A stretch of 64,000 bases of DNA from Ascoidea asiatica JCM 7603 (taxonomy: Eukaryota; Fungi; Ascomycota), in the NCBI GenBank assembly GCA_001600695.1, contig BCKQ01000001.1:847014-911013 (forward strand), given 5' to 3'. The position numbers were made by a program, and so were the translations under genes. Below are positions 6,780-56,794 of this stretch, in pieces (positions within the stretch are counted from its first letter, which is position 1; every line of letters begins with the position of its first letter). A model generated the notes under the pieces. That model was given only the letters and a program-made list of their open reading frames with translations, had not been told where the DNA came from and made no database searches.

Positions 6780-8951
6780 TTAAATTGGAAATTTTTTAAC
6801 ATCTAACAGAGATAAACAATCAATTAAATTATTATATAATTGTGGATTTTGAATAATTACATTTAATAAATCTTTTTCCATAGATTTAATTAAAATTTTA
6901 CCTTTTTCATTTTTTATTAATGAATTTAATAATAAAGAAGCAGATATTGAAATTTCAGATAATTTTGATTGATTTTGATTAATATTTTTAAAATCTGGAA
7001 ATATATTATTAATTAAATTAATTTTTGATTGTTGAACATTCAGTTTTTCTAAATTTTGATTTGTTATTCTAAATTTTTTTGGAGGATTATTAACTTCTTT
7101 ATTTGCAATTTTAAAATTTACAGGAAATTGTCTTGGTTCAATACCTTTAATAATAAATTTTTTAATATTATTATTTTGATTTATAACCATTGCAGAAGAA
7201 TTTGGAAAAGCATTTGCAACATTTTTAATAAAATCAACAGCTTGTAATAATTTTTTTGAATTAATTTTTTCAAAAATTGGTAAAAATTCTTTTTCATATG
7301 ATTTCCATAAAGAAATTTGAGTAACTTCACCAATTGGATTTGAAATAAAACAACATTTTAACCATTGTGTTGCTCTTAAAGGTTCATTTAATTTATTAAT
7401 TTGTAATTTTAAATCATTTGATAAATTTTGAGCAAATTCAGGTACAGATTCATTAACTCTTGGAATTAAAGTTAATGGAATTTTAAATAAATTTAATGAA
7501 TTTAATGAATTAAATAAATTATTTTTTTTATTAAAATTATTTGTAATTGAATTAAATAATAATAAATTTGGTAAAATTTTTAATAAATTTATAAATCTAT
7601 AATTTGAATTTAATAAAAAAGAAATTTTTAAATTACCACCAGAAATTATAAATTGATATAAAAAATCTAAAGTTGATAAAATTAAAATTGGATCTTTATT
7701 AATATAAAGATAATTAATAATTTGATTTAAGAAATTATTATTAATAGAATCTAAATAATTTGAATTTAATGAATTTGGTTTAATTTTTATAATTAATCTT
7801 GAAATTGATCTTAAAATAATGATAATAAAACCTCTATCATAATTAAATTTAAAATTATTTAAAAATTTAAAAAAATTTATTAAATTATTAAATAAATTTA
7901 AAACTAAAATATTTGAATTATTTAATTTTAAAAATGAAGAAATTGATTCAATAATATCTAAATTATAAGATAAAGATTCAAGAATTAAATCAAAATAATT
8001 ATTTGTAGGTAAAAAATTTTTAAGTAAGAAATTATTTGAAAGATTTAAGAAATTATTTAAATATGATAATATTGAATTATTATAAGATAAATATTGAGCA
8101 AAATTTATATCTTGAGATAAATTTCTTAAGATTAAAGCTGAATTTAAAGAATTTAATAAATTAATTTTAAATTCTTTATCTTCTTCATCTTCATTATCAT
8201 CTTCATTATCAGAATAATAATTGGATTGTAAAGTAAAAGGTATATTTTTTTTTAATAAATTATTTAAATCAAATTTATTTAAAGTTATTAAAGGATTATT
8301 AATAAATAATTTAATTAAATTATTTAAAATAAAAGTATTTTTTAAAAGATTTAAATTTTTTAATTGATTAAATTCATTATTATTTTTATTTATTAAATTC
8401 TTATTAATATTTTTATTTTTATTATTATTATTATTTTCATTATTTATTAAAGATTTTGAAGATAAATTAATTAAATAATTTAAAGCCCAATTAATTTCAG
8501 ATTGTAAATTTGAATAAAAAGTAAAATTTAATCTATTTAAATTATTTATTGAAGATTTATTTAAACCATGAATTCTATTATAATTAAATGGAATTTTATT
8601 TATTATTGAATTATTTGAATTAGATAATATTAAATAATTATTATTATTTGAAATTGATTGAAATATTTTTTTATTATTAATATTAATAGATTGAAAATTA
8701 TTAGTAGAATTATTTGATTGTTGAATGGATTGAGATTTTAATGAATTTTGAATTATTGGAGATGGAATTATTTCAATATTTGAATCATTATCATTATTTG
8801 GATTTAATATTGAATCATTTTTTAATTTCAGATTGTTATTGTAGTTATAGTGATTATTGTTATTGTTATTGTTATGAATATTATTATTATTATTGTGAAT
8901 GTTATTATTTGAATTTAAAGTCATTGATAATCTTGAAGGAGTTAAATTTGG

Positions 8952-8984
<33 letters not shown>

Positions 8985-9236
8985 GTTATGAAAAGATAAT
9001 TTTGAAATTTTATTTAAATTATTTGAAGATATTGAGATTGAATTTGAATGAGATCTTGGAGAATTTTTATTTGGTCTTCTACCTGGAGTTGTATCTGGAA
9101 GAAATGGAACATGAGGTTTTGGAGCATGACGAAGTCTTCTACCAGACAGAATATCAGCAGAAGTAGCAGAAGTAGCAGAAGTTGAAGAGGAAGAAGAAAT
9201 TGAGGGACCTGGAGGAGGTGTCTGGTTTGTTGGCAT
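6780..9236 (-). CDS. RSC9: RSC chromatin-remodelling subunit Rsc9 (RFX-type winged helix), Asn-rich
   Basis: EPLRATQWLKCCF...GEVTQISLWKSYE..F....LLQAVDFIKNV..AFP.S.AMV...KFIIKGI.PR. First ATG at 9236 (MPTNQTPPP); the track extension from 9413 is low-complexity. Confidence 0.9.
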
Positions 9237-9541
9237 TGAAGATTTGATTAAAAGAAGTGAAGAGAATGAGAATGAGAATGAGAATGAGAAATAAGAAATG
9301 AAAAGTTGAAAGTTGAAATACCCAAAGAGTGAAAAGAGTGAAAACCAGTGAATTGTGGAATAAAATAATTGAATTTGCAATAATATCGATAATAACAATA
9401 ACAATAATAACAATAAAGCATAATAATGTCAATATCAATAATAAATAACCAAAGTCAGTGATTATCACAATCTGCTGAAGTGCAGTGATGTTATTTTGAT
9501 AGCAGCCGGTCACATGGGCACAAAAGGTCAGGTGAAAGAAC

Positions 9542-9731
9542 GGAGCCAGGTACAGGGTACTTCTTTTATGAGACCATAGTTGTGGGTGTTCTAAAACGAG
9601 ACCAGAACATTGGTACTCCTAAAGCGAGACCAATTAAATGGTACTCTTCATTTGAAACCATTTTACTGGTACTCTTTGAAAGAGACCAACTATTTGGCAT
9701 TTCTTGTTTGAATCCATCTTTCTGGGTCTGG
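9542..9731. repeat. Array of 7 quasi-palindromic units (GAGACCA-N6-TGGTACTC-N7) at exact 28-bp period
   Basis: CCA cores at 9546, 9574, 9602, 9630, 9658, 9686 and 9714, each followed by 6 variable nt and then TGG (GGG in the first unit). Confidence 0.92.
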
Positions 9732-10359
9732 CTACTTTTGCATGTGTTTCTTTCCTTTTGCTGCTGATTGAAGGAAACTTTTCTTTCCGAAGATTGCGCT
9801 GCACGCCCCAGCACTGATTCCCACAAGGCCCTAATTGTTTTATCTAACGCCATTCAATTGAAAAAACACATTCAAATAGAATCAAATAATCAAATATAAT
9901 CAAATATACTCAAATATTATTATATTCAATTATAAACAATTACATTTAATATATTATAATAAAATATAGTCACTTATATTATATAAAGTTATATTAATTC
10001 ATTGTTTCATAACTGTTCATTATCTCCTGTCTTTTGTCTATTTACTTACTCTTAATCTTATTATTTGTTGGGTTAATACATTCAACTCATCTATTCTAAC
10101 CTAATCATAATCATAATCATAATCATAATCATAATCATAATCAATAATAAATAATTAATATTCTATATATTCATACATATATATATATATATATTCTTAT
10201 TACTATCTCTTTCTATCTCTTTCTATCTATCTATATATCTATCTATTTGTCTTTCTTTGTTTCCTTTTTCAAATCAATTTCAATAATATTCAATCAAATT
10301 CAATCATATTCAATCAAATTCAATCATATTCGATAATAATAATAATATAAAACTTCAAA

Positions 10360-12406
10360 ATGTCTTCTCAATTAGTTGATCCAGAAACTTTACTTTATCC
10401 AACTGCATATCCTTCAATAATTAATGAATCTTTATCACTTAAAGATTCTTTACATAAATTTCCATTAAAACAATCTGATATAAATAATGCTATAATTATA
10501 AATAATAATTTTAATCAAAAAAATTATTCTCCAATTTTTAGAAATAAAGCTTCAAAAGATAATTTATTTACAACTTTACATCCAAATTTAAAAACTGTTT
10601 ATGATATTTTTCAAAATACTGTAAATTTATATCCAAATAATGATTTTTTAGGTAAAAGATTATATAATAATTCAAAATTAAATGATTTTGATGATTTTTT
10701 TACTTTTGAAAATTTTAAATCTTCTCAATTAAAAAGAGATTATTTAGGTTCTGGAATTTTAAAATTATTTGAAAATAATAAAAAATATTTTAATAATTTA
10801 ACTTTAAAAAATAAACCAAATTTTATTTTTGCAATTTTTGCAAGTAATTGTTATGAATGGATTTTAACTGATATTATGTGTCATGCATATTCAATTCCAA
10901 ATACAACTTTATATGATACTTTAGGTCCAAATTCAACTAAATTTATTTTATCTTTAACTAATTCTCCAATAATTTTATTAAATAAAGATAAAATTAAAAA
11001 AATTTGTTCTCTTATTCAAGAAAATAAAAATTCCACAAAAGAAAATGATGATGAAAATGAAAATGAAAAAATTAATTTACTTTATATGATTTCAATTGAA
11101 GAATTAAATGAAAATAATAATGATGATAAATTATTATTTAATTTAACAAATTCTTTAAATATAAAATTATTTACTTTTAATCAAATTATTCAATTAGGTA
11201 AATTAAATCCATTTAAAAATATACCACCAAAACAAACTGATTTAGTTACAATATCTTTTACTTCTGGTACAACTGGTAAACCAAAAGGTGTTGAATTATC
11301 TCATGCAAATTTCATGGCAGCTTTAACATTTTTATATTGTCATGTTTATTTACCAAAAAATCCACATTCTTTATGTTTTTTACCTTTAGCTCATGTACTT
11401 GAAAGATATAAAGTAATTTATGAAATTTGTGCAGGTGCTGCAATTGTTTTCCCACATTTACCAGGTAATATAAAAACTTATATTGATGATATAAAATTAA
11501 TGAATAATTCAACACATTTATGTGCTGTACCAAGATTATATAATAGAATTGAAAGTGGTTTAAAATTAAATTTAAATTCAATTCATGGTTTTAAAGGATT
11601 TTTAATTAATTCAATAATTAATTTAAAACAAAATTTAATTTTTAAATTTAAAATTAATGAAAATAATTTTTTAATAAAATTAATAAATAATTTAATTTTA
11701 AATAAAATTAAATCTAAAATTGGTTTTAAAGATTTAAATTTTTTAATTTGTGGTTCTGCTCCATTACAATCATCTTCAATAAAATATCTTAGAACTGTAT
11801 TATCATGTGGATTTTTTATTGGATATGGTGCAACTGAAACTTTTGCAGGTATTGCAATAAGTGATTCATTAGATAAAAATCCAAATAATTGTGGACCAAT
11901 TGGTGTAACAAGTGATTTAAAATTAAAAGATCATATTGAATTAAATTATTCATGGGATTTAAATAAAAGTGGAGAAATTTTACTTTCTGGTCCACAAATT
12001 TCAAATAAATATTTTAAAAATTTAAAATTAACTGAAGAAAGTTTTGAAATTGATGAATTTGATAAAAATAAAAAATGGTTTAAAACTGGTGATATTGCAA
12101 AAATTGATATAAATAATGGTAATAAATTAATTATTATTGATAGAGTTAAAAATTTTTTTAAATTAAGTCAAGGTGAATATATTGCTGTTGAAAAAATTGA
12201 AAATTTTTATTCAACTTATGCAGGTAATATTATTGATCATATTTTTATTTATGGAGATTCTTATCAATCATATTTAATTTCAATTATTGGTTTAACTTCA
12301 ATTCATCAATTAATGAAATTAATTAAAGATAAAAAAGATTATTTTGATAAAACTTCATCATCATCATCATCATCATCAACTTCAGATAATGAAAATGAAA
12401 ATGATA

Positions 12407-12449
<43 letters not shown>

Positions 12450-12873
12450 TCAAAGAGATTCATTAATTCAAAGAGCAAAAGATATTACAAATTTAAAAAA
12501 TAAAATAAATCCAGATGAAGAAATTCAAAAAATTTTATTACAAGATATTTTAAAAGAATTTTATGAAGAAGAAAATTTAAATTCAGAAAATTATAATAAG
12601 ATTTTAGAAAAATTATTAAATGAAAAAATTATTAATAAAGATAAATCTCTTAGAAGATTTTTATTAATTGAAATTAATAAATTAGTTTTACCAAGTGAAT
12701 TATTTGGATTTGAAAAAATTAAAAATTGTGTATTTAAAATTGAACCAATGACAATTGAAAATGATTGTTTAACACCAACATTAAAAGTTAAAAGACCAAT
12801 TTGTAAAAAAATGTTTAAAAAAGATATTGAAGAATTATATAAAGAAGGTCTTCTTGAATTAAGAAAATATTAA
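10360..12873 (+). CDS. Long-chain fatty acyl-CoA synthetase (FAA2/ACSL type)
   Basis: [57 protein letters not shown] and LTPTLKVKR. Confidence 0.95.
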
Positions 12874-18141: not shown

Positions 18142-19501
18142 AAACAAAATTTAAATTTAAGAATCTTTTAATTATTATAATTATTTTAATTATTATTAAA
18201 TTTAATAGAACATTTATTATAAAAAGTTATTATTAATTTATATTAATATGTATTTAGTTGTAATGGATAGGTCTATCTAGATGATATTTAATATTGTAAA
18301 AGTATTTATTGAAGCTATATATTTCGAATTGCTTGATTATTAAAATAAACTATTAATTCTAATAATCAAGGGATTACTTATTTATATAAATGGGATAAAT
18401 CCTATGAATTGATTAGTAATGACACCTAATGCGGAATGGCCCACTAGTGTTCATTACATTAGTAAAATAGACCTTGAGACCAATATTTTGGGTCGTATTC
18501 GGAGTTTATGTCATGCAGTTCATGCAGATATTGAATGTGTAAGTATGCATGATGTATGCGTGTGCGGGTATGCGTGTGCGAGTATGATGTATGTGTGTGC
18601 TTAGAAATTGTGGCGTAAAGATTTAGATATTGCGCGCATTTCGGAATTAGTTTTTGTGTTGCGTTGATTATGATGAAGATGCGTTGCTGTAAATGCGTAC
18701 TAAACGTGTTTCATCTACGCAATTGTATTACAATAGCACTGCAATAGCATTGCAAAAGCGTTCCCAGAGCGGAGTTATCTGATTACAGCGGTGATATTGC
18801 GCGGTTTTGCTCCGCTCGGAAGAACATTGAAATAAGCTGAGCATTGAGCTAATTTGTTTTGGGTGCGAGAAGTCTGAGACAGCGAGAGAAGAGACAGAAG
18901 GAGAAGAAACACCAAAGGAGGAAGAAGAAGAAGAAGAAACAGAAACAGACTCAGACCACGACAAGACAAGACAAGACAAGATAAAACAAAACAAGGTGAG
19001 GGTCAGACGAGTGGGAAGAGAAGAGAACAGAAGAGAACAGAAGTGGGACATTTTTAAGAGGCTGATTGAAGCGAATGAATGTTATTGATAATAAATACAT
19101 TCTCTTCTGTATTCTTTTTCAAATAATTCTGAATTTGTGTCATTGAGTTGATTCTGACTACAAAAGAGGAGATTGAGACTGAAATGACTGGAAGTGATGC
19201 TATTATTATTGTAGTTATTATTGTAGTTATTATTGTAGTTATTATTGTTGTTATTGCAGTTATTGTTATGTTCTTTCTTTCTCTTAGATAAGATTCACCG
19301 CGTATTTTCCAAATTTCGGTTTCACCGCTAGTTAAAATCATACTTAAAATCATAGTCAAAATCTGATAACTCAAATGAAGTTTATTTCAATATGGAAATT
19401 GAATCAAAATTGTAAATGAATAAAATATTTACTATTTAAACAAAAGATATTCCTCTTTATATATTATTTAATATTCATTATTCAATTCAATTATTTTCAA
19501 A

Positions 19502-40803: not shown

Positions 40804-41070
40804 TGACGTGGCCGTGGAACAGCGACAGAAGAAAACCCAAAGAAACGGTGTGAAACATGTCATGCGCACGCATGAAACCAATCGTGTGGAACTTTTAATT
40901 TGGTCACGTTTACATTTGAATCCATTGATACGGGTCTTGTTTTTTATGTTACGTAATCATGCCAGTGGCTTTGTGTGGCAAGTGTGCTGCGCCCTTTGCA
41001 CGTGCTCCTCTGCTGTGGGCTTAACTGCTTGCGGGTTCAGCTTCGGCGCGATTTCGCGTTTGCGACGCGT
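40804..41070. promoter_or_regulatory. GC-rich YSY6/KTR divergent promoter: TGACGTGG (UPRE/CRE-like, 40804), TTACGTAA (40949), SCB-like TTTCGCG (41052), MCB ACGCGT (41065)
   Basis: Consensus matches read directly from the sequence. Confidence 0.5.
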
Positions 41071-55189: not shown

Positions 55190-56794
55190 TTTTAATATAA
55201 GTTATAATATATAATTTATTATATTAATTATATAAATATATTAAAAGAAATAATGTTATAAAAATTATAATGTGAATATAATGAAATTAAAATGAGATTC
55301 AAATTAAAAATAAAAATTAAAAGGAAACAATATTAGAAGTATTTATATTAAGTATTAAATAGATAAATGATAAAATTTAAATTAGAAATTATAGATTAAA
55401 ATTTTAAATGTAATTAAATCAGCTAATTAAAGAATTATGATTGATAATTGAAAATTGATAATCTATAATGGAAATTTATTGGATCAAAATATCATAAGGG
55501 AAAAAAATTTAAGAATTTTAAGAATTTCAAGGAATAAGGAATAAGGAATTCCATATTTTACAAATTGTTATTACTATGAGTAAGTAAATGGATGTGGTTT
55601 AATTTACCTATTGAAAACATATAAGCAAAATGATTTTTCAATTATTTATTTACTATTTACTAAGCTTATTTACTGTCAATAAAATTAGTAGTGAAACTAG
55701 TTATTAATTAAGATGAACTTTGTTTATAATTTCAGTATTATATTAAGGAATATAGTTTTTTCTTCAAAGGTATTAAAATCAGAGAAGAATATTATAACTG
55801 CTTTAGTTAAGGTTGCGAAATAATTTTAAGTGTTTATTGATTATTGCTATGCAGAAAGTTTGATTTGAATTCTAGTTGAATAAAGTGCTGTATGTATGAT
55901 AAGAAGAAAACTTCCGAATTGGGTTAATATACGCATCGCTCGATGATGAAATCATTCACTATGGTTTTGTAGGGTATTGTATGGTTTGGTTGGCATATAT
56001 TTTATTCGTCTGTCTGGTTTAATAGTGGGATTTTTTATTAAGAGTAATTACATAAGTAATGAGTAACTAAAATTAATAATAAATAACGATAATACTAGAA
56101 TAAGTTGGTTTTGGGAGTCGTCAATTGTAAATAAAAACAAAGAACATGAAAAACATTATAAAAATCACCTCATTTTTTGTTGAGGAAACTTAGAAAATTT
56201 TAAATACATTTTTCAATAGAGTCTATTTACATTTGAGAGTGTTTCTTTCATGTAATTAACATCGTAATTGATAGCATTATTATCATTTTTATCATAATCA
56301 TCGCAATTCTTAAATCAAAAAAGTGGATTAAAAACGAAGTTTCCGAGAAGCAAAGCAAAAAAAAGAAGTTTTGGCAATCAATTTTTCAAGTTGCTGAGAG
56401 ACCATCTTTGTGGGTCTTCTTTAAAAAGTAATGACGTGTATTGAAGCAACTACAAGTTGTTCCATCCCTATGGTGGTACCATTGTAATGGATCCCTGTCA
56501 AGTGACACAAGCCAATATAAGAGATCGCCCCCGTGAAGATTAAACCCAAAATAAACCCAGATCTGAAATATTTTTGTATTGAAGCTAGTTCCAAATTTCT
56601 AATTTTCGGATTCCAGTTTCTGATTTTGGGTCTTGCTTTAATTTTAGGTCTTGAAAGTGATCCAGTCCTTCTACATATTTTTGATTTATTATTTTATTGT
56701 TCTTTTGTATTGTTCAGTGATTTTACATAATTGATCTGAGAAAAATGCTATTCTAAAGTAAAAAACTGATGAAAAACTGAAGCCAAAACAAGAT

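Follow-up and report, generated by a model that had tools for sequence, protein, structure and literature searches.

A phased promoter array in Ascoidea asiatica belongs to a genome-wide bipartite motif resembling general regulatory factor sites

Seven phased units lie between RSC9 and a FAA2-like gene

We analyzed a 64-kb stretch of contig BCKQ01000001.1 of the ascomycete Ascoidea asiatica (hereafter the window, whose coordinates serve for all position numbers given without a contig or locus name), in which the intergenic region between an RSC9 homologue and a FAA2-like gene carries a head-to-tail array of short, quasi-palindromic units. As detailed below, this array is a locally amplified form of the bipartite motif GAGACCA-N6-YGG-NN-CTY, which recurs throughout the genome and which is probably recognized by a lineage-specific protein resembling the general regulatory factors (GRFs) of other yeasts. 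The locus comprises the following features:

6780-9236, minus strand: RSC9 homologue, extended at its N-terminus by an asparagine (N)-rich stretch; 306 bp separate its ATG from unit 1
9500-9899, no strand assigned: GC-richer island holding the array (35-48% GC, against 8-27% around it)
9506-9520, no strand assigned: CCG-N6-TGG (CCG-GTCACA-TGG), out of phase and without both outer arms; not counted as a unit
9542-9569, plus strand: unit 1, GGAGCCA-N6-GGGTACTTC; degenerate, in phase, left arm without the A and right arm GGG rather than YGG
9570-9597, plus strand: unit 2, GAGACCA-N6-TGGGTGTTC; exact GAGACCA-N6-TGG core
9598-9625, plus strand: unit 3, GAGACCA-N6-TGGTACTC; perfect consensus
9626-9653, plus strand: unit 4, GAGACCA-N6-TGGTACTC; perfect consensus
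9654-9681, plus strand: unit 5, GAAACCA-N6-TGGTACTC; one mismatch
9682-9709, plus strand: unit 6, GAGACCA-N6-TGGCATTTC; GAGACCA-N6-TGG core kept
9710-9731, plus strand: unit 7, GAATCCA-N6-TGGGTCT; degenerate
10360-12873, plus strand: FAA2-like long-chain acyl-CoA ligase (AMP-binding); about 630 bp separate its ATG from unit 7

Cutting the sequence at 9542-9731 in register yielded seven head-to-tail units with an exact period of 28 bp (unit starts at 9542, 9570, 9598, 9626, 9654, 9682 and 9710) and with CCA at unit positions 5-7, just as the initial annotation of this DNA, made from its letters, had described them. The in-register consensus is GAGACCA-N6-TGG-NN-CT(C/T), with variable bases at each N, and then a T-rich linker. 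Columns 1, 5-7, 15, 16 and 20 are invariant in all seven units and columns 2, 14 and 23 are kept in six of them; in the loop (columns 8-13), the majority base is mostly found in just two or three of the seven. Mean pairwise identity is 0.76 for the arms (columns 1-7 and 14-20) as opposed to 0.32 for the other columns, with 0.26 expected at random, and this difference between the arms and the rest is significant both in a Mann-Whitney test (p = 2.8e-5) and in a permutation of the mismatch positions (p = 0.003). The earlier view that the arms are conserved while loops and linkers drift, unlike the uniform decay of a minisatellite, was therefore upheld. When up to three mismatches were allowed, the unit pattern matched seven times in the 64-kb window, compared to 0.24 matches expected from shuffles. 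Tandem Repeats Finder, run on the window, did not call the array because the units are too diverged outside the arms. An eighth copy had been proposed at 9506; its letters are indeed there, but without outer arms and out of phase it is indistinguishable from a chance match.

The contigs of two sequencing runs (2016 and 2023) span positions 9300-10079 with zero differences, and no polymorphism in array length was seen between these two read sets; both may be the source of the assembly, so they do not provide independent support. A 293-bp contig identical to positions 9606-9898 was also present in a run from the same study that is labeled as another organism (X4), at a depth of 2.7 compared to about 31 for that run's own contigs, and is probably sample carry-over rather than a relative.

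The flanking genes bear out the original placement of the array in an RSC9/acyl-CoA-ligase divergent promoter. The left gene matches the S. cerevisiae Rsc9 of the RSC cryo-electron microscopy structures (E 3e-51 in a PDB sequence search) and was also identified by an exhaustive representative search, while a word-indexed homologue search with the N-rich RSC9 protein returned no match; the right gene encodes an AMP-binding ligase. Both proteins contain long asparagine-rich low-complexity stretches, in keeping with a genome of about 23% GC, and their extra length amounts to about 350 N-terminal residues in RSC9 and to about 90-150 amino acids beyond its relatives in the ligase.

The units belong to a motif found throughout the genome

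We scanned the whole genome (20.3 Mb in 71 contigs) for the motif and used the reversed pattern as a control, with the following results:

21-mer GAGACCA-N6-TGGTACTC, up to two mismatches: 192 matches (reversed control, 13)
21-mer arms with an N5 spacer: 5 matches (reversed control, 11)
21-mer arms with an N7 spacer: 23 matches (reversed control, 3), many of them truly N6 sites with a GGG right arm
GAGACCA-N6-TGG, exact: 364 matches (reversed control, 9)
GAGACCR-N6-CGG, exact: 234 matches (reversed control, 11)

Position 7 is an A in about 93% of the GAGACCR-N6-CGG matches listed, and this share together with the exact-pattern counts gives about 600 strict sites genome-wide. The motif is thereby enriched approximately 20- to 40-fold, and its N6 spacer is strict. 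What had been taken for a local peculiarity of one promoter is actually one instance of a genome-wide element, most of whose roughly 600 copies are single sites outside arrays.

Each site extends over 21-24 bp and is bipartite: a near-invariant GAGACCA is followed by six largely unconstrained bases, YGG-NN-CTY and a T-rich tail. Position +23 lies outside the searched pattern and is hence unselected; a T was found there in 45 of 51 sites (those of 39 fetched loci and of the rest of the window), and G was absent just before the site. Among secondarily found sites we observed a second flavor of the right arm, YGGGTNTT. The flanks of single sites are otherwise unrelated to one another.

Several sequences accompany the motif. 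In three unrelated loci (L014 at about 2522-2560, L017 at about 2522-2565 and L030 at about 2522-2565; minus-strand sites), TTACGTAAT, a bZIP-type palindrome, and then GTGA(C) are located 20-35 bp upstream of a single GAGACCA-N6-TGG site, with which TTACGTAAT may form a composite module. TTCCC(C)GGG stands just 3' of the last motif unit in three unrelated promoters (L023, L026 and L030; PGK1, GND1 and CDC50) and may be a second co-occurring element. Two of the fetched loci, L038 and L039 (G000 C29:71515-76515 and C32:4003-9003), come from two small contigs and duplicate each other almost exactly over 5 kb; their short open reading frames (ORFs) are the same, and a motif-like match falls within a 120-codon frame.

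Sites are concentrated in promoter-bearing intergenic DNA

The location of the sites was determined in a 259-kb sample made up of the window and 40 loci of 5 kb each, which holds 69 core sites in 44 clusters. Even though ORFs of at least 150 codons cover 61% of the sampled DNA, a single one of the 44 clusters lies within such a frame (p = 1e-16). Divergent intergenes contain 12 clusters, tandem ones 25 and convergent ones a single cluster, which departs from an expected 1:2:1 ratio (p = 2e-4). The nearest site-facing ATG is at a median distance of 428 bp (interquartile range 334-790 bp). By hand count there is no bias in orientation, as 15 sites point the same way as the downstream gene and 10 the opposite way.

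The neighboring genes are unrelated to one another. Those of metabolism include PGK1 (with six units), aldehyde dehydrogenase (ALD), hexokinase, 6-phosphogluconate dehydrogenase (GND1) and adenylate kinase (ADK1); others are UGP1 together with PEX11, peptidase M3, GCN1, PDS5, POL3, SEC27, a septin gene, VPS53, CDC50 and FIP1. A zinc-cluster (Zn2Cys6) transcription factor gene is also found next to an array (L034), and it matched no known regulator. An association with tRNA genes and TFIIIC was considered and rejected, given that only two of the 40 loci have a tRNA gene as close as about 100 bp to a site.

Besides the array, the window itself contains three further occurrences:

18476-18491, plus strand: single site with an exact GAGACCA-N6-TGG core, intergenic
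40874-40933, plus strand: GAAACCA..TGG and, at a distance of 44 bp, GAATCCA..CGG, both weak; a KTR-type mannosyltransferase gene follows about 600 bp downstream
56398-56418, plus strand: single site GAGACCA-N6-TGGGTCTT, intergenic

Tandem sites keep a pitch of 27-29 bp

Adjacent head-to-tail pairs of GACCA-N6-YGG with a period of 14-44 bp occur 34 times in the genome, compared to none in the control. Three of these pairs were set aside as an unrelated 32-bp repeat near contig ends. The periods of the remaining 31 pairs are 27 bp (11 pairs), 28 bp (11) and 29 bp (4), with one pair each at 30, 31, 36, 39 and 43 bp, so that 26 of 31 adopt a pitch of 27-29 bp where 31 spacings were allowed. Another 15 pairs are separated by 32-61 bp, and in 13 of them the distance is a double period (54-57 bp) with room for an intervening unit, which is there in degenerate form. 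Inverted pairs no more than 30 bp apart are present at six loci only, as against the 31 direct pairs.

The scan for further arrays phased at about 28 bp, which had been suggested along with the first description of the array, thus led to head-to-tail arrays at no fewer than 17 separate loci. Seven of these were read as sequence (RSC9/FAA2, peptidase M3, PGK1, the zinc-cluster gene, PDS5, GCN1 and ALD), and about ten others are known from pattern matches alone. The seven arrays that were read comprise 3-7 units each, with a near-invariant GAGACCA and differing loops. We found no similarity between the array flanks of different loci and no terminal inverted repeats. The only mutually similar arrays are two on contig 13 (L034 and L035), which share 87% identity over two units. 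Within the L035 array, two neighboring units are identical, and we therefore conclude that arrays grow by tandem duplication, of which this is a recent case.

At a pitch of 27-28 bp, sites of about 24 constrained bp nearly abut, and three units correspond to about eight helical turns. The uniformity of the pitch across unrelated loci implies either selection on spacing or a strong mechanistic bias.

The 32-bp sequence that was set aside (G000 C3:1324-1355, C13:433545-433576 and C15:340257-340288, all near contig ends) has two GACCA..TGG-like halves 18 bp apart without a GAGACCA arm; it seems to be an unrelated family of subtelomeric repeats.

Traces of the motif in related species

The closest named relative is Ascoidea rubescens, whose ligase and PGK share 63% and 81% identity, respectively, with those of A. 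asiatica. In 86 kb of A. rubescens DNA that we scanned, three core matches were found: two at PGK1 and a third, weaker one inside a gene. The two PGK1 matches are inverted relative to each other, 52 bp apart and 530-585 bp upstream of the ATG, in a GC-rich promoter of 840 bp for which we estimated by hand a chance expectation of about 0.02 matches. PGK1 of A. asiatica carries a six-unit array. From this one promoter comes a hint that the factor and the left arm predate the split between A. asiatica and A. rubescens, while the number of sites and their targets would turn over. The A. rubescens PGK1 promoter (L052:9380-9480) presents, in this order, a Reb1-like CGGGTAA, a motif copy, CACGTG and an inverted motif copy in a compact GC-rich block of about 100 bp. 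The PGK1 and RSC9 loci of Saccharomycopsis crataegensis contain weak core matches only, none of which is in either promoter.

The A. rubescens RSC9 gene (L057:9146-10966, KV454476.1) is annotated with 322 amino acids, and an upstream open frame extends it to 607 amino acids; its gene model is probably truncated at the 5' end.

Resemblance to characterized binding sites

The sites of the S. cerevisiae GRFs (Abf1 with RTCRYN5ACG, Reb1 with TTACCCG, and Rap1) share many properties with the motif, as they occur in hundreds of copies, intergenic and promoter-proximal, independently of orientation and next to unrelated housekeeping genes. One classic target of Rap1/Abf1 is PGK1. The Abf1 site also has two short arms around unconstrained bases. 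In sequence, however, the Ascoidea motif is unrelated to all three. Abf1 itself was rejected, given that the motif does not fit RTCRYN5ACG, and the Abf1 family PF04684 was not found in the genome by a Pfam search whose controls were uninformative. S. cerevisiae GRF sites are, to our knowledge, not known to form strictly phased head-to-tail arrays. The turnover of GRF motifs between yeast lineages, including novel motifs restricted to particular species, is documented (PMC2897762).

A further resemblance is to the sites of Zn2Cys6 dimers such as Leu3 and Uga3 (CCG-N4-CGG), which likewise have everted 3-bp cores (CCR...YGG) and a strictly fixed spacer. The right-hand CGG is over-represented (T:C of 1.7:1, where the background is about 3.3:1), and at least one zinc-cluster transcription factor gene (L034) has an array upstream of it. 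In contrast to the Zn2Cys6 sites, the left core of the Ascoidea motif is CCA rather than CCG by about 13:1, and its 7-8 bp outer arms (GAGA.. and ..NNCTY) hold much of the information, so the likeness is one of resemblance only. We know of no characterized zinc-cluster protein with a GAGACCA-N6-YGG site. Because C at position 14 is over-represented relative to composition, a zinc-cluster dimer on everted CCR/YGG triplets is a candidate for the factor; a multi-finger C2H2 protein and a paired or CENP-B-like protein with two helix-turn-helix domains are other candidate classes.

Mcm1, a general factor in yeasts whose MADS-box family P-box (Mcm1/SRF; CC(A/T)6GG) also is a CC/GG dyad with an A/T-rich center, had been dismissed at the outset on the grounds of spacing, and rightly so: the Ascoidea dyad is CC-N8-GG, and the N5 and N7 spacers (5 versus 11 and 23 versus 3) are not comparably enriched relative to N6 (192 versus 13). 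The conserved outer arms moreover do not match TTACC/GGTAA.

Outside fungi, the family of repeats in oriP of Epstein-Barr virus consists of 30-bp units, each with an EBNA1 palindrome, and the papillomavirus E2 site is ACC-N6-GGT. These viral elements are similar in that repeats of about 30 bp are arranged head-to-tail, each with one dyad around a free center and with ACC...GGT-type arms. The Ascoidea arrays differ from them in being chromosomal, in lying at many unrelated promoters, in comprising 2-7 units of ACC-N8-GGT and in lacking an episome context. There is also some likeness to the tandem repeats that tune expression in yeast promoters and to the Su(Hw) array of gypsy, both being DNA of variable repeat number with factor sites or nucleosome exclusion. 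In the gypsy insulator, a zinc-finger protein site is repeated 8 or 12 times over 340-430 bp (PMC3022720). Compared with these, the pitch in Ascoidea is tighter and far more uniform across loci. In the literature, the letters of the motif matched only primers, and no relevant paper was found on promoter motifs of Ascoidea.

Discussion

We consider it likely that the motif represents the sites of a lineage-specific, GRF-like protein, which in the window would be packed at fixed pitch in a GC-rich island serving both divergent genes, RSC9 and the FAA2-like one. That the motif is a protein binding site we infer from its near confinement to promoter-bearing intergenic DNA. Its copy number far above the composition-matched expectation and its presence in promoter intergenes, in either orientation and at unrelated genes, are the properties of the GRF class. 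The annotation from which we started had favored an array of sites for a dimeric protein that could not be assigned to any known yeast factor; the enrichment, the N6 spacer, the promoter confinement and the packing at 27-29 bp speak for such sites, while the cooperative or polymerizing behavior that was part of this proposal is something we infer from the pitch. The element would be a GRF-like site, bipartite and specific to this lineage, whose head-to-tail phasing is unusually strict.

Mechanistically, an abundant sequence-specific protein would read the two arms across an unread 6-bp center. With the CC and GG cores 9 bp apart from center to center, both halves would be exposed on the same face of the helix, and the putative factor would probably be a dimer or a two-domain protein. 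Single sites would serve, in the manner of GRFs, as marks of promoter-bearing intergenic DNA at several hundred places next to unrelated housekeeping genes, and a minority of promoters carry head-to-tail runs of 2-7 sites at a pitch of 27-29 bp. The RSC9/FAA2 array, with seven units in 190 bp, might keep a nucleosome-sized stretch occupied by the factor and could serve as a shared upstream activating or nucleosome-excluding element for RSC9, for the FAA2-like gene or for both. The arrays probably originated by tandem duplication of one site with a minimal linker, after which selection would have held the arms and the pitch as loops and linkers drifted. A more far-reaching version, which is possible and which we hold only tentatively, is that a lineage-specific pioneer factor or GRF binds head-to-tail at a pitch of 27-28 bp and thereby forms a polar, nucleosome-sized filament on selected promoters, where array length would set openness or output. 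A phased promoter array of such a kind has, as far as we know, not been described in yeasts.

Several observations weigh against the proposal of a GRF-like factor acting at these promoters. The right-arm frequencies (positions 17-21) are biased, as the sample of sites was partly chosen with the full 21-mer, and the fixed pitch could partly be a by-product of how arrays arise instead of reflecting cooperative binding. The motif was not found within about 1 kb upstream of the three enolase genes, which are intact and encode 439-442 codons each (L054 C3:1338978, L055 C1:763042 and L056 C1:418451 of G000). It therefore does not mark highly expressed genes universally, nor does it regulate glycolysis, and the idea of a glycolysis regulon was rejected even though PGK1, hexokinase, GND1, UGP1 and ALD carry sites. 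Some single sites follow a stop codon by 46-110 bp, with the next ATG more than 1 kb away (L033 and L043; 594 bp in the case of L037), and such sites close behind stop codons fit a role on the terminator side or at a boundary no less than an activating one. Lastly, conservation at the orthologous promoters, a further expectation, did not materialize: in A. rubescens, the array is present neither before the orthologue of FAA2, around which the gene order differs too, nor before RSC9 despite conserved RSC9-RAD10 synteny, and a role at those two genes is therefore not ancient.

Other explanations of the motif have to be weighed against a GRF-like factor. The factor could act mainly in boundary formation, as a roadblock terminator or as an insulator, in which case the array would be a barrier between the RSC9 and FAA2 transcription units. 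In S. cerevisiae, Reb1 and Rap1 also serve as roadblocks. Such a function would suit the single sites that follow stop codons by 46-110 bp between tandem genes (L033, L036, L037 and L043), the action in either orientation and an architecture like that of the zinc-finger protein site arrays of the gypsy insulator (PMC3022720). We nevertheless regard it as rather unlikely, as most sites are 200-650 bp upstream of an ATG and only one cluster is found in a convergent intergene, a place that would also suit pure terminator or boundary elements. It shares the premise of protein binding with the GRF-like reading and differs in the output, and sequence alone cannot separate the two. Quite improbable, in our view, is that the motif is a replication-origin element, that is, the consensus of this lineage for the origin recognition complex (ORC) at autonomously replicating sequences, with the arrays as strong origins. 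Promoter-proximal GC-rich origin motifs exist in Komagataella, an AT-rich consensus would lack specificity at about 23% GC, the sites are strictly intergenic, and some 600 strict sites at roughly 450 or more loci in 20.3 Mb correspond to one per 35-55 kb, which is an origin-like density. However, convergent intergenes, in which origins of the S. cerevisiae type are enriched, are avoided (1 of 38), the distances to start codons resemble those of upstream activating sequences, and head-to-tail arrays of up to seven units at a pitch of 27-29 bp have no precedent among ORC sites.

The array is, by its form, a head-to-tail tandem repeat, and the identical adjacent units of L035 together with its similarity to L034 over two units are what one would expect of a selectively neutral minisatellite or of a dispersed mobile repeat (a miniature inverted-repeat transposable element or transposon subterminal repeats, the latter having been among the initial suggestions) that sits in promoters by chance. 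This explanation is largely refuted and very improbable: the decay within the window array is strongly non-uniform, most sites are single with unrelated flanks, the flanks of arrays are non-homologous and devoid of terminal inverted repeats, inverted pairs are rare, loops differ between copies, unlike in copy-and-paste spread, and a function is indicated by the way in which sites are excluded from ORFs and convergent intergenes. We give the least credence of all to a transcribed array of short bulged hairpins, either as a repeat-spacer non-coding RNA, which the initial annotation had listed last, or as an RNA element of an untranslated region. A 7-bp stem with a bulged A can be drawn for each unit, and the array folds better than shuffles (z of -2.1 for the plus and -3.2 for the minus strand); such excess stability, however, is expected of any run of inverted repeats, and the minimum-free-energy folds pair units with one another rather than forming unit hairpins. 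The stem requires positions 7 and 14 to pair, yet A7 and C14 occur together in about 218 sites and G7 is about 13-fold rarer than A7 even opposite C14. Left-arm variants with GAA and GAGT likewise stand without compensation, so that the lack of compensatory changes noted for the array at the start holds for the genome-wide sites, which show no covariation of the RNA type. In addition, there is no orientation bias relative to genes, and the array had no match in Rfam.

The promoters of budding yeasts are organized by a few GRFs whose identity shifts between lineages, and outside the Saccharomyces, Candida and Yarrowia models such factors are largely unknown. A. asiatica offers a clean case, with a long, information-rich bipartite motif in about 600 copies and its near-total exclusion from coding DNA, and adds a second layer of organization in the form of fixed 27-29 bp head-to-tail arrays at 17 or more unrelated promoters. 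With the array as a ready-made affinity bait, identifying the factor should be easy, and the natural series of one to seven sites at the same pitch would allow asking how the number and spacing of sites affect nucleosome exclusion and expression. If it is true that the pitch reflects cooperative head-to-tail binding, these arrays would constitute a new promoter architecture for fungi.

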